DNA of 34,927 bases from positions 910,457 to 945,383 of the forward strand of contig BCKQ01000006.1 of the NCBI GenBank assembly GCA_001600695.1. Reading direction: 5' to 3'. A program made the position numbers and the translations under genes. The notes beneath the pieces were generated by a model. It did not search any database, was not told the DNA's origin, and worked only from the letters and a program-made list of their open reading frames with translations. This document shows positions 3,069 through 11,719 of the stretch, in pieces. Each line of letters starts with the position of its first letter. Positions within the stretch are counted from its first letter, which is position 1. Source of the stretch: Ascoidea asiatica JCM 7603. Taxonomy: Eukaryota; Fungi; Ascomycota.

Positions 3069-5295
3069 GTATGTCCTTTTTTTTGAAAACCTTTATTTTT
3101 ACCAACACCATAGTCAGATTCTTTTTTTATTTTCTAAATTACTTCATTTTTAGTAGTGGTTATAGAGTTTTATATTTTCATTCAAGCTTAATAAAATTTG
3201 TACTTTTTTAAGTTAAGTTATTCTAAGATGGTATTCGCGTTGCCCTGCATTATTTAGATGCTTTTTTGGCTGTGATTTGAAAACAAATACTGACAAACCA
3301 CGATTGAGTTTCTAGTCATGTGCTTAAGAAGAAGCAATAGTTAATGAAGATATCTCCGGGATTAACCAGCCACAACTAAACTGTCTTAAACGGCTAAAAA
3401 TATGTTTTGTACATAGTTTACGCTTTTTTCCTACTTTGGATATCAAGTAACTGTTCTGGATTCAATCCCGTGATCAGCGGAGAAAGTGCAGTGCGCAAGC
3501 GCTCTTGTGCAATTGGTAGAGGGGAATGCAGCAAAGCTCCACTCAGATTTTTCCATAAAAGGGGGAATACGTGACTTCTATGTGACCTCCTTATATTTTC
3601 CGGTGGCGGTTTCATATTTTTTGTGCCTGTGTTGAAGATAAGACCCCATGGTTTTTATTTTTAGCACGTGAATGTGCTGCTGGCTCATGGATAAATATAT
3701 TTTACATACTAATAAGACATCACATTATCAAAAGTACCATACTTTGCCATCGCTAACTCTGATAATCATAATCAACATTATAATCATAATACTAACGATA
3801 ATAGTATCACTTACTGTTCGAGAAATTCTTTGAATGCTCTTTTGATATTGATATTGAAATTGGTGTTAATATATTAACTAATTTGACAATTCGAGTATAT
3901 CTCAAATACAGTTCAAACCAAAAACAATCTCTGCAAACTCCAACAATTATAATAAATCCACTGTCGTCAATCACAATAATTATAATATTCGAAATCATAA
4001 CAACAATCTCCAAGATCTACTTTATACCTAACACTAAAGAAAATATATTCCCAACAAATCAAAAGTCACTCCTCCTCAATTCTATTTATTACAATCTCCT
4101 ATTCAATCTCTCCCTTTTGATAAAAATTTTATGAGAATTGTTGTCATTTCAATCTTTTCATAAAATACTTATAATATTTATCTTTTCCTATTAACTTATT
4201 CCAATTTTATTCATTCAAACTTTACGGAAATATTTAAAAGTAAAAAGCAAGTTATTTATCTATCGATAATCCTTCATACATACAAAATATAATTTCCTTT
4301 TTTATTTCCATCTACAGTTTATTTTGAATTTACAGTTCAAATTTAAATTTGTTTTCTTATTGGATTTACTCATTTCAACTTGAGAAAATATTTTCAAATA
4401 TTAATAATATTCTTTGTTCAGAGTATTTTCTAATATTAGTATTCTTTGTTCAGAGTAAATTTCCTTTTACAAATTCTCTAAAATAATTTTCATTCAACAT
4501 ACATACCTTTAAATTATAAGACAATATCGAAAGACCTCTTTCCAATTAGAATCCTTATATTCAATCAAATAATAAAGATAACTAATAGCTAATAACTTAT
4601 TAAAAATATTATAAAATCAATTTAAAACTTTTAAAATTATTATTTTAATAACCTGCCCATACTAATAGTTATCTTGTACTATTTTACAGAAACTTTATAT
4701 TAAAATCATTCAATTTTGATTCCTTTAAATATATTCTATTATCTAATACTGGGGTTTACTGTATATCAATATTAGTTAATTATAAAACAAATTTTGTATC
4801 CCCTTACTTCAAATTATTCAAATACTTATAATAATCAAAAATATTATTTGTGGATTATATAATTAAATTATAGTATTGACTTATACTTTAATTCAAAAAA
4901 ACTTCGGTTGATTATTCATCAAACTTATACATCAATAATATTTTATTCCAAGTTTTATTAAATTATCTTAAAGTTCACCTAAAAAGATAGTATTACTTGA
5001 TTCAAGTTTAATTAAAAGAATTTTTTTTAAATTATTCAATTTTTTAATCTTTGAATTATTCCTTTTAAATTTTTAAACAAACATTAAACAATTTTCAAAC
5101 AAATTCAAATTATTTAGAATTTTTTCACAAATTTCTACTAAACTTCTCTTAAACTTATTTCAATTATTTTAATAACTTTTTTAAAATTTCTTCTAAATTG
5201 CGTTTAATTTCTTTAAAAATTATTTTCAATCTCCTCGAAGTTTTAATTACGAAATTTACCTTATTTTCTTAAAAGAAATATTTTACTAATCAAAA

Positions 5296-7563: not shown

Positions 7564-9657
7564 TCATATATGTTTGATATCTGTGTGACCTAAATATCCA
7601 ATATTACCTTTTAAAGGAGGCACCATAATTTCATAATCCTGAGTTTCAGCATTTATATCTTCTTTATTTTTTTCAACATGAATTGTTATACCCAAACCAT
7701 CTGGATCTACAGGATATGCAAAATTTCTTTTTAGAGGATCTAAAATATTTACTTGATCTAGATAAGGTAGTCTAGTTATAGAATCCACAGAGGTGGGGAC
7801 TTTTGATTTTCCTATAAGATAATAATTAGAATTATTTTCTACAGGTATTATAGAACAATAGTTTCTTTTATTATTAAAACAAGAATTGGGATAAGCTCTG
7901 TTTGTTTTATTTGTATCATAAGCAAAAATTGGAATCATGTCTTCTTCAGTTTCAGTACCAAATTTATGAATACTTTTATTTTGAGAAAATAAAGTTTGAG
8001 CAACGAAATTTGGAGGAGGTTCATTTACGATTGCAGAAGAAATAATATTTAACATAAATCTTGGATCATAAGAAGGATTTAAAACAATTTGAGGATCAGT
8101 TGATTGAAATCTACCAATTGTAGCTAAATGAACATCACCAGATAAAATTGTTATTCTTATACCAGAAACAGCTTGAAAAGATTGTAATTTTTTCATGAAT
8201 AAGTTTCTTTCTTTTTTATGATTTGCAGAACACCAATGATCATTTAAATCATCTAAAAGATCAATATCACCATCAAAATTTTGAACTAAACCTGGAGCAA
8301 GATTATTATTTTTTAAAAATTTTGAAAAAGTTTGAGTTACAGTATTTGATAATAAACCTTCAAGGAATACTAATCTTGGATACATTATAGGCACACCGAT
8401 TAAAATTAATAAATGTTTGATTTCATTATTTGATTTATAAATTTCTTTTGTAATTCTTTGAAATAAAAGATCATAAGTTGAAGGATAAATAATTTGATTT
8501 AAAGTTCTTTCAGTTCTACAATCAATAGCTAATAAGGCAATTTTTTTACCTAATCTTGTAAAAATTGAATGAGAAAATTGATTAATATAAGGACCAACTT
8601 TAGAACCTAATAACCAAGAAGGTTCATTTAAAATTTGTTCATTTGGAGAAGTATGATGTTGAAAAATCAAATAATATTTATAAGCACTTTGACCTAAACA
8701 TTTAAACATTGTTGAAGAATTTGTTTCATGAATATAAGAGCCATAACCATCAATAATATCATGATCATCAAAAATATTTATTGAAGGTATAGTTGATAAA
8801 ACTTTTGGATATAATCTTAATAAAGTATAACATTTATCACCAACTAAAGAACCTTTACCAAACCAATCAATATAATGATTTAAATAAAAATTATTAAAAG
8901 ATTGAATATCATCATGAGAAGCAATTTCTTTTCTTCTTGTTTCAATATTTTCTTGTAAATAAGATTTATAAAGATGATTTTGAGATTGAACAGCATCACA
9001 ATAAATTTGATCACCACCACCAATCATGACATGAAATGGAATTATTTCATGTTTTTTTAAAACATCAAACCATAAATTACCCTTAAAATTTGTTGAATCA
9101 GAAGGTGGACAAAATCCATTACAAGAATAAGATAAAATATTCATTGATTGAGAATTTGAAGGTAAGAAAAATTGATATTCAGGACAATGAGTTGAATTTA
9201 TTGAATATTTAACTTTTTGTTGAATATTTGATAAAATTAAATTAATTTCAAATCTCCAAAATAATAAATTTTTTTCTTTATAAAATAAAATTCCAGGAAA
9301 ATTACCATTTAAAATTTGTATATTATTTGAAAAAGAATCTAATTGATTTGGATATAAAGGACCTAATTGATAACTTATAATTGGAATTGAAGATGAATAA
9401 CCTGAAGAAGTTGTGAATTCGGTTGAAGTTATAATTAACATTGAAGCTCTATAATTATTTGAATTATTTTCTAAAGTACCTAATAGTCTTAGTATTGGAC
9501 CACATCTTATATCTAATTGGGGTTGACCAATTGCTTTAATTTGAAAATTTGGTTTAACTTTAAAAGAATTTGACTTTGCAATTGATGTATAATATTTTAA
9601 TGTAGAACCAGATTCAAACCACTGATTCTTTGAATTTTGAGAAGGATAAACTTGCAT
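7564..9657 (-). CDS. PhoD-like metallophosphatase-domain protein (fungal YGR266W-like family)
   Basis: 697-aa ORF with CGPILR, FHVMIGGGDQIYCD, DDHDIIDGYGSY, DCRTERT, LLDDLNDHW and LSGDVHLA motifs; no signal peptide visible. Confidence 0.85.
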   Translation of the reverse strand: MQVYPSQNSKNQWFESGSTLKYYTSIAKSNSFKVKPNFQIKAIGQPQLDIRCGPILRLLGTLENNSNNYRASMLIITSTEFTTSSGYSSSIPIISYQLGPLYPNQLDSFSNNIQILNGNFPGILFYKEKNLLFWRFEINLILSNIQQKVKYSINSTHCPEYQFFLPSNSQSMNILSYSCNGFCPPSDSTNFKGNLWFDVLKKHEIIPFHVMIGGGDQIYCDAVQSQNHLYKSYLQENIETRRKEIASHDDIQSFNNFYLNHYIDWFGKGSLVGDKCYTLLRLYPKVLSTIPSINIFDDHDIIDGYGSYIHETNSSTMFKCLGQSAYKYYLIFQHHTSPNEQILNEPSWLLGSKVGPYINQFSHSIFTRLGKKIALLAIDCRTERTLNQIIYPSTYDLLFQRITKEIYKSNNEIKHLLILIGVPIMYPRLVFLEGLLSNTVTQTFSKFLKNNNLAPGLVQNFDGDIDLLDDLNDHWCSANHKKERNLFMKKLQSFQAVSGIRITILSGDVHLATIGRFQSTDPQIVLNPSYDPRFMLNIISSAIVNEPPPNFVAQTLFSQNKSIHKFGTETEEDMIPIFAYDTNKTNRAYPNSCFNNKRNYCSIIPVENNSNYYLIGKSKVPTSVDSITRLPYLDQVNILDPLKRNFAYPVDPDGLGITIHVEKNKEDINAETQDYEIMVPPLKGNIGYLGHTDIKHI

Positions 9658-10236
9658 TTTGACTTGTTTAATTTTAAATAAAAAGGAAAGAAGTTTTTGA
9701 GAAAAAAGAACGAAAAAAGGTTATAAGAAAATCAAAAAAAAAAGATAGATCAAAAAGAAAAAAAGGAAAAAAAAGAATAATATATATAAAACAATAGGTG
9801 AAACCTAAAAACATAATTAGAATAGAATATAGCCAAATCTTAGATCTTGATTTACGGTACCGTACATAGGGTTTTATAACTCTACTCAGATTTGAGCATT
9901 TGAGAATATCAGAACCAGTCGAGGATCTCGTAAAGGATAAAGATTAGAACAGAGAACTATGGATCAAGGGTAATACTGATCATGTGATGAGAAGCCGCTG
10001 GGGTTATCGTACCAGAACAGAGCAGAGCACAGTGACGTGATTTGAAAGTTTGGTGCATTGGATCCACTTCTGTGGAGTATCCTCATCATTTAACAGGTTA
10101 CGTAATCATAAAAACAAGGCTAACCGTTTTATTAGAGCCCTTGATGGCTTCAGTTATGTCCAGGACAGAGGTATAGAGGCAGGGTGACCCTGATTGAGTA
10201 AAATTACTGTGGACAGATTTGGGAATTCTGATGCTT

Positions 10237-10243
10237 TATAAAT
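10237..10243 (+). promoter_or_regulatory. Candidate TATA element for the snoRNA host transcript
   Basis: TATAAAT at the downstream edge of a GC-richer island (~9840-10220), ~140 bp before the GTATGT donor. Confidence 0.35.
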
Positions 10244-10382
10244 CTTCAAATTATTTATTTCCCAGGAAGAGTTTAAAGAACAGAAAAAAATTTGCTAATT
10301 ATAATTTATGGTTATGGTTATCAATATTGCAATTTCAATTGCAATTGCTTCAAAGATTTATTCCTTGATGCTTTTTTGAAAG

Positions 10383-10695
10383 GTATGTCTCAAAGTTATC
10401 TCTCGCTGGTTGATTACTGAAATTATTTTTCTCAATAGAAGTATAAAGGTTTTAAACCTCAAGTGCTGGACAAAGGCTTTTAGGAAATGGATTTGATTTT
10501 ATTATGATGAATTACTTCTCTGCGTTATCGATTTGAAAAGGTTTCTTTACGAAGTTATCTAAAGGAAAAAAAAAAGTTTTGCTTTTCTGATATTAACTAT
10601 CCTATTGTAATTTCCCAATTCCTTTGGTTAAATAAAAAATATCAATTAATCCATAAGCTAATTTTCAATTACTAACAATTTATCTTTATTTATAG
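10383..10695 (+). other. Spliceosomal intron (313 nt) of an apparently non-coding snoRNA host transcript
   Basis: Perfect yeast signals in correct order and spacing: AG|GTATGT 10383-10388, TACTAAC 10670-10676, T-rich tract, TAG 10693-10695. Flanking exons give no continuous ORF. Confidence 0.8.
10500..10594 (+). ncRNA. SNR68: Box C/D snoRNA, snR68 orthologue (predicted guide for 25S rRNA Am2640)
   Basis: C box ATGATGA 10504-10510; guide TCTGCGTTATCG 10519-10530 complementary to 25S CGAUAACGCAGA (S. cerevisiae ~2638-2649, recalled sequence); D' TTGA 10533-10536; D box CTGA 10587-10590. The fifth base upstream of D' (T10528) pairs with A2640, the known snR68 target. Confidence 0.82.
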
Positions 10696-10984
10696 TTTTT
10701 AATAGATTTCTAATAAATTTTTAATAAATTTTTTCTTTTTTTCAAATTATGTTTTTGTTTATGTAGTTGGAAAATCAGAACGAGTTCTTTTTCCTTTTTT
10801 CTTTCAATTTGAACCGATTGCCTTTGAAAATGATAATTATTTTTCTTGTTGAATTTATTAAAAAGGATTTCTATTTATAATAGATTGTATTAGATAAATA
10901 ATACTGACAACAACTATTTACCTGTAATTATAAAACAAAATAGAATAAACTAAATTAAAATGAGAAAATAAATATATATTATCT

Positions 10985-11719
10985 TTAATCTTGTTCAGCA
11001 ATTGAAATTAAACGCTCTTCAATTTGTTCAGGTGTTAATATAAAAAAATCATCTTTAATTCCAACACCAATTTCAACATCATTTTTTTTTAATTCTGTAC
11101 CTAAAATATTTGAAAATATTATAATTGTTTCATCAACAACTTTAATCCAATCTCCTTTAATAAATTCTTTTTTCTTTAATTTTTTCTCTAAAACTGTAGT
11201 GGCTTCATCTTGTTTTGGTCCAATTGCTGTTGCTTTTGATCCAATAAAATATCCTGCTGGATCACATTTATATAATAATGGTCCCTTTTCATCATCAAAT
11301 GATCCAAATGTTAATGTAACTCCTAAAGGTCTCATATATGCTCTTTGTGTATAAATTTGTGATAAATTTGCCATTCTTTTTGATAAAATATCACATGGAA
11401 TTTCATATCCATATTTATAACGAAATTCTGCTGCTTCTGATTTAGCTCTTAAGGCTTGTGATCTACCATCTGCAATTGATCCTGTTGCAATCATTCCAAT
11501 CAATGGAGTTATTTTAAATAAATAACTTACTGTACTTGGATCTAATAACTTATCTGGTACTTTTTTCTGAGAAATTAAAACAACTGAATCTTCTCCACAT
11601 ATACCTAATGCATTGATATTTGCTGCAGTTATAGCCTTAAATGCATATTCAACTTGATATAATCTACCTTCTGGTGAAAATATAGTAATATGTCTATCAA
11701 ATCCAGCTGATCTTGACAT
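10985..11719 (-). CDS. SCL1: 20S proteasome subunit alpha-1
   Basis: N-terminal signature [63 protein letters not shown]-terminal [11 protein letters not shown]. Confidence 0.97.

Follow-up and report, generated by a model that had tools for sequence, protein, structure and literature searches.

Between a PhoD-like gene and the proteasome gene SCL1 of Ascoidea asiatica lies a gap of 1327 nt in which an earlier note had listed, in order on the plus strand, a TATA-like motif, a splice donor, the boxes and guide of a box C/D snoRNA, a branch site and an acceptor. The question raised by this locus is whether these motifs belong together, as a non-coding gene whose intron carries a snoRNA of the snR68 type, or have to be explained otherwise. 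The gap was analysed as part of the whole stretch of 34,927 nt under study, here called the window (26.7% GC), and searches were extended to the A. asiatica genome assembly (20.3 Mb in 71 contigs). Direct reading and a script both recovered every motif of the list at its given place. The gap is flanked by the following genes:

7564-9657, minus strand: PhoD-like gene (PhoD_2 family), left neighbour
10985-11719, minus strand: SCL1, proteasome alpha subunit, right neighbour

The SCL1 protein shows 88% identity to SCL1 of Ascoidea rubescens DSM 1968, the nearest genome available, and the PhoD-like protein shows 57% identity to its orthologue there; these values point to a budding yeast of the Ascoidea type at a considerable distance from A. 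rubescens. SCL1 of A. asiatica is a single uninterrupted ORF of 244 codons (ATGTCAAGATCAGCT...) with its start at 11719. The A. rubescens gene (L003 6001-6833) carries an intron of 98 nt directly after ATGTCGA (GTATGT at L003 6008, GACTAAC, TAG), and this intron is thus present in one relative and absent in the other. The snoRNA unit is located within the gap on the plus strand, and its elements and those of its putative host are:

10237-10243, plus strand: TATAAAT, candidate TATA box of the host, read from the sequence; no aligned motif in A. rubescens
10244-10382, plus strand: putative exon 1 of the host, holding a 23-codon short ORF (sORF, 10308-10379) with its stop before the donor
10383-10695, plus strand: putative intron of 313 nt with donor GTATGT (10383-10388), TACTAAC (10670-10676, branch A 10675) and acceptor TAG (10693-10695)
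10498-10596, plus strand: predicted box C/D snoRNA of snR68 type, about 95 nt, its ends placed by the conserved TTTTATT preceding the C box and TATT following the D box
10504-10510, plus strand: C box AUGAUGA, read from the sequence and aligned to the Rfam snR68 C box with high posterior probability
10519-10530, plus strand: 12-nt antisense guide TCTGCGTTATCG, complementary to 25S CGAUAACGCAGA
10533-10536, plus strand: D′ box UUGA, identical in A. rubescens, with Uuga in the corresponding place of the Rfam snR68 consensus
10587-10590, plus strand: D box CUGA, read from the sequence
10696-10800, plus strand: putative short exon 2, with AATAAA at 10713 and 10726, convergent towards the SCL1 3′ end

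The unit shows the boxes and the guide by which box C/D snoRNAs are recognized. An RUGAUGA motif and a CUGA motif lie close to the 5′ and the 3′ end, respectively, both boxes being identical in A. rubescens, and the rRNA complement of at least 10 nt that is looked for beside D or D′ is a perfect 12-nt one here, at positions 3-14 upstream of D′. A terminal stem was judged by eye to be possible between UUAUUA (before UGAUGA) and UAUUAA (after CUGA), with 5 of the 6 positions paired, all A-U, and one U.U; a similar stem, likewise judged by eye, is possible in A. rubescens. The minimum free energy fold of the snoRNA did not contain the terminal stem, and the single-sequence fold was no better than the folds of shuffled sequences (z +1.75). 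Directly after D′ an internal hairpin is found in both species, built from different sequence. Since conservation is lacking upstream of the D box, the unit appears to have one conserved guide, as does snR68 of Saccharomyces cerevisiae.

For the identification of the rRNA target, the position was read from metagenomic eukaryotic LSU sequences; the 25S rRNA of A. asiatica is absent from the assembly, in which nuclear rDNA was not found with a 12-mer, a 23-mer with 3 mismatches, a sarcin-ricin-loop pattern or the 5.8S model. T10528 is the fifth nucleotide before D′ and pairs with the 25S A at position 2640, as counted from the conserved 5′ end of the metagenomic LSU sequence L019. The 19-mer holding the target occurs in 15 metagenomic contigs; three were checked and proved to be complete eukaryotic LSU rRNA genes. 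In S. cerevisiae, Am2640 of the 25S rRNA has been assigned to snR68 (PMC5699541). The guide upstream of D′ therefore selects, on L019 numbering, the A2640 that defines the snR68 family, and the earlier reasoning from the D′+5 position to this target was correct. No other place in the assembly matches the guide's reverse complement, which makes the unit the only candidate guide for the A2640 site. Taken as sequence evidence, these results support the assignment of the predicted snoRNA as an rRNA-methylation guide of the snR68 type. The single LSU near-match in the assembly, AGTACGAGAGGGACAG on contig 34 (G000:C34:59293-59308), looks like mitochondrial LSU.

Covariance model searches were less favourable. 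At the gathering score, Rfam gave no match in the whole window. In a relaxed scan snR68 (RF01235) appeared, as one among other weak matches, with 16.7 bits (E 5.3) against a gathering score of 80, so that the snR68 match predicted for 10480-10620 fell below the threshold. Only the C box, the guide and D′ are aligned in this match, with high posterior probability; the model comprises 137 positions and the RNA described here about 95 nt. When the whole A. asiatica genome was scanned with RF01235, no match was obtained. The top score of the relaxed scan (19.5 bits, E 1.5) belonged to snR79 at 10361-10458 on the plus strand and includes a 12-nt identity to the model consensus, UUUCUCAAUAGA. Because it runs across the donor and lacks a proper C box (UGAUGC) as well as a D box, this match was rejected as chance.

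The comparison with A. rubescens was performed by shared-word anchoring and local alignment of the snoRNA, as a global MAFFT alignment was misaligned because of the differing segment lengths. The A. rubescens guide is located about 470 nt downstream of the SCL1 stop codon on the opposite strand, in the same position and orientation as in A. asiatica; beyond SCL1, both species have a RhoGAP-like gene. A. asiatica and A. rubescens share three identical blocks: TTTTATTATGATGA (14 nt, 5′ flank and C box), TCTGCGTTATCGATTTGA (18 nt, guide and D′) and CTGATATT (8 nt, D box and 3′ flank). The A. rubescens region contains one GTATGT (L003 7372) and one TACTAAY (TACTAAT, L003 7139), which flank the snoRNA in the same order. 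The intron segments differ in length, with 121 nt in A. asiatica versus 42 nt in A. rubescens on the donor side and 79 versus 104 nt from the D box to the branch site. The downstream segment of A. rubescens holds an (ATT)n run, and the remaining intron and exon sequence cannot be aligned. The branch site there is TACTAAT, not TACTAAC, and the acceptor could be either of two AGs. No snR68 guide is present around SCL1 in Saccharomycopsis crataegensis, Candida metapsilosis, Cyberlindnera fabianii and Wickerhamomyces ciferrii; the SCL1-linked synteny is thus not common to these four other yeasts.

Donor, branch-site and acceptor motifs flank the snoRNA on its own strand. GTATGT and TACTAAC each occur once on the plus strand of the gap, on either side of the snoRNA and in the right order; the donor at 10383 is preceded by AAG, and GTATGT also serves as donor in the annotated intron of A. 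rubescens SCL1 (ATGTCGA/GTATGT...GACTAAC...TAG). In simulated sequence of the composition of the gap, a bracket consisting of GTATGT at most 200 nt upstream and TACTAA[CT] at most 200 nt downstream arose in 0.07% of the trials. The distance of about 80 nt between D box and branch site, which the earlier note had called typical of intronic C/D snoRNAs, is accurate at 79 nt, but the word typical is soft in view of the 104 nt in A. rubescens; the argument also adds little because the range of 32-120 nt at other bracket loci, into which the 79 nt fall, is partly set by the search pattern. Elsewhere in the window, GTATGT...TACTAAC...YAG is found only at 3069-3804 on the plus strand (GTATGT at 3069, TACTAAC at 3790, YAG ending at 3804), and this could be a candidate intron of 736 nt in a long ATG-free stretch.

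The same arrangement recurs in the A. asiatica genome. The pattern TGATGA-N55-110-CTGA-N30-150-TACTAAC gave 44 genome matches versus 9 in a reversed control, and GTATGT-N20-160-TGATGA-N55-110-CTGA gave 85 versus 16, with about 12 loci present in both lists. Four bracket loci were sampled, and three of them match Rfam snoRNA families inside the bracket, two above the gathering cutoff and one just below:

G000:C14:60385-60898 (L027), second unit: U14/SNORD14, 67.8 bits, above the cutoff
G000:C2:582456-582544, minus strand: snoR38/snR38, 60.2 bits, above the cutoff, in a donor/branch-site bracket
G000:C9:535813-535906, minus strand: snR13, 44.7 bits (E 4e-6), just under the cutoff of 47, in a bracket

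snR13 is not known to be intronic in S. cerevisiae. The region G000:C14:60385-60898 contains two consecutive GTATGT-C-D-TACTAAC units about 290 nt apart, and judged by its motifs it looks like a two-intron host, possibly of snR190 plus U14. Identical or near-identical pairs of C..D..TACTAAC units were also noticed, namely C15:260289-260442 (minus) with C15:363376-363528 (plus) and C49:4915-5111 (minus) with C56:1351-1547 (plus); these may go back to duplication of snoRNA-like units or to duplication in the assembly.

With its conserved signals, its genome-wide recurrence and the lack of a reading frame across the junction described below, the interpretation of the bracket as the intron of a non-coding host is supported. 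Going by the sequence alone, we consider it quite probable that the locus is a small RNA polymerase II gene on the plus strand whose only conserved content is a snR68-type box C/D snoRNA within the 313-nt intron. We infer the following course of events. The host would be transcribed by RNA polymerase II from an AT-rich promoter near 10237, and the core snoRNP proteins Snu13, Nop56, Nop58 and Nop1 would gather on the C/D kink-turn while the intron is still nascent. Splicing would release the intron as a lariat, which would then be debranched. Exonucleases would shorten the debranched intron until only the protected RNA of about 95 nt is left, and the exons, both short, would remain as a non-coding by-product. 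In the mature snoRNP, the 12-nt guide would pair with 25S rRNA and Nop1 would methylate the 2′-O of the A2640 equivalent.

A real snoRNA could instead be produced from a transcription unit of its own, GTATGT and TACTAAC then being unused relics or coincidences. This is known for snR68 of S. cerevisiae, where an independent transcript serves as the precursor and is processed by Rnt1 (PMC5934358), and a TATAAAG at 10442-10448, inside the putative intron and about 55 nt upstream of the C box, would suit such a unit. In A. rubescens, however, the 42 nt between GTATGT and the C box hold no TATA, and both splice-type motifs have been kept in the two species amid diverged surroundings. The chance probability of the bracket calculated above also speaks against coincidence, as does the fact that the same bracket surrounds the U14, snoR38 and snR13 matches and is about 5-fold enriched over the control. 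An independent unit is accordingly regarded as unlikely.

For the evaluation of the intron-hosted arrangement, the coding capacity of the host exons was analysed exon by exon. In none of the three phases does a frame opened by ATG extend as far as the donor, and stop codons follow the acceptor within 8 codons in all three phases; as no ATG frame crosses the junction, the host is considered to be non-coding. Further downstream on the plus strand there is only the antisense of SCL1, and the intron is therefore not a 5′-UTR intron of a coding gene. The exons cannot be aligned with A. rubescens and hold no conserved ORF: in place of the 23-codon sORF, A. rubescens has only ATG frames of 4 and 13 codons with unrelated sequence.

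These observations bear on the possibility that the host transcript does more than carry the snoRNA, either through the sORF, which would encode a hydrophobic peptide, or through convergent antisense transcription modulating SCL1. The sORF is intact and A. rubescens has the same convergent orientation towards SCL1, but the sORF is not conserved there, the exons are unalignable, short ORFs are expected by chance in sequence as AT-rich as this, and the synteny may simply reflect shared ancestry. Such a function of the host is quite improbable, and it is still more doubtful that the convergent pairing of snR68 host and SCL1, conserved in the two diverged species, is functional or that the exon-1 micropeptide is made. 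If either were the case, the host would be more than a disposable carrier, and a functional pairing would mean that host transcription or termination into the SCL1 3′ end couples expression of a proteasome subunit to the transcription of ribosome biogenesis genes. That the locus is a pseudogene in decay, or a set of motifs brought together by chance, and yields no functional snoRNA, as the subthreshold Rfam score, the weak terminal stem and the missing thermodynamic signal might suggest, is extremely unlikely given that the identical 14-, 18- and 8-nt blocks fall exactly on the boxes and the guide although the PhoD-like proteins are only 57% identical, that no other candidate guide for A2640 exists in the genome, and that the internal hairpin is found at the same place in A. 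rubescens from different sequence.

The candidate TATA box of the host at 10237 lies just downstream of a GC-rich island (9850-10250, 40-46% GC versus 26.7% in the window) that is single-copy in the genome. The island gave no Rfam match, no ORF of at least 50 aa and no fold signal on either strand, and with this result and the A. rubescens comparison its reading as an exonic non-coding RNA of the host was rejected. In A. rubescens the PhoD-like orthologue lies elsewhere in the genome, away from the snR68 host, and has an unrelated GC-rich island (49-52% GC, L024 3300-3550) upstream of it; none is present upstream of the snR68 host. The island is for this reason assigned to the PhoD-like side and probably belongs to the promoter or 5′ region of that gene.

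Comparable arrangements are known from other yeasts. In a supplementary table (supplement file 3) of Donovan et al. 2016, snR68 is listed in a non-genic intron in Candida parapsilosis, Candida orthopsilosis, Lodderomyces elongisporus and Candida albicans (PMC5033589). Most C. albicans C/D snoRNAs are intronic according to these authors, who cite Mitrovich et al. (PMC5033589), and their snoRNA table builds on Mitrovich et al. 2010, Science 330:838 (PMC5033589). Compared by the tabulated data, the Candida-clade snR68 genes carry the same family name, span 91-110 nt by their coordinates versus about 95 nt here, and reside, as predicted for the A. asiatica unit, in the intron of a host without a protein-coding gene. 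They differ in belonging to the CTG clade and not to an Ascoidea-like lineage, and the SCL1 neighbourhood of C. metapsilosis lacks the guide. Because snR68 had already been placed in non-genic introns of these four species, only the lineage is new. The proposal of an intron-bearing host is supported, and its novelty is limited to the Ascoidea lineage and the SCL1-linked locus.

The S. cerevisiae counterpart (RF01235) resembles the unit described here in the order of C box, guide and D′ (UUGA), in the guide core CUGCGUUAUCG and in the same predicted target. It is longer, about 137 nt versus about 95 nt, and it is an independent unit whose 5′ extension is cut by Rnt1 (PMC5934358), whereas the A. 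asiatica unit is bracketed by intron signals. The intronic snoRNAs of S. cerevisiae in this comparison (for example U18 in EFB1, U24 in ASC1, snR38 in TEF4) have protein-coding hosts, in contrast to the A. asiatica host without a junction-crossing frame. Intronic snoRNAs mature by splicing, lariat debranching and exonucleolytic trimming (PMC5033589), and the route followed by those of S. cerevisiae is the same as that expected for the A. asiatica unit.

In the non-coding snoRNA hosts of vertebrates (the UHG, GAS5 and SNHG class), only the intron-encoded snoRNA is conserved, and the exons are short, non-coding and fast-evolving. The putative A. asiatica host resembles them in its conserved intronic snoRNA and its short, fast-evolving non-coding exons. 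It differs from them in having a single intron, a single snoRNA and splice signals of the yeast type.

With this locus, the annotation of Ascoidea-type yeasts gains a previously unannotated snoRNA gene and, by extension, about a dozen others like it. The finding suggests that the Ascoidea lineage keeps intron-hosted C/D snoRNAs, including U14, likely snR13, and snR68, that are not intronic in S. cerevisiae. It would thereby provide one more data point for the published progressive loss of snoRNA introns across budding yeasts, and no concept is changed. Its practical value lies in genome annotation and in the choice of loci for tests of snoRNA processing in a yeast of 27% GC.
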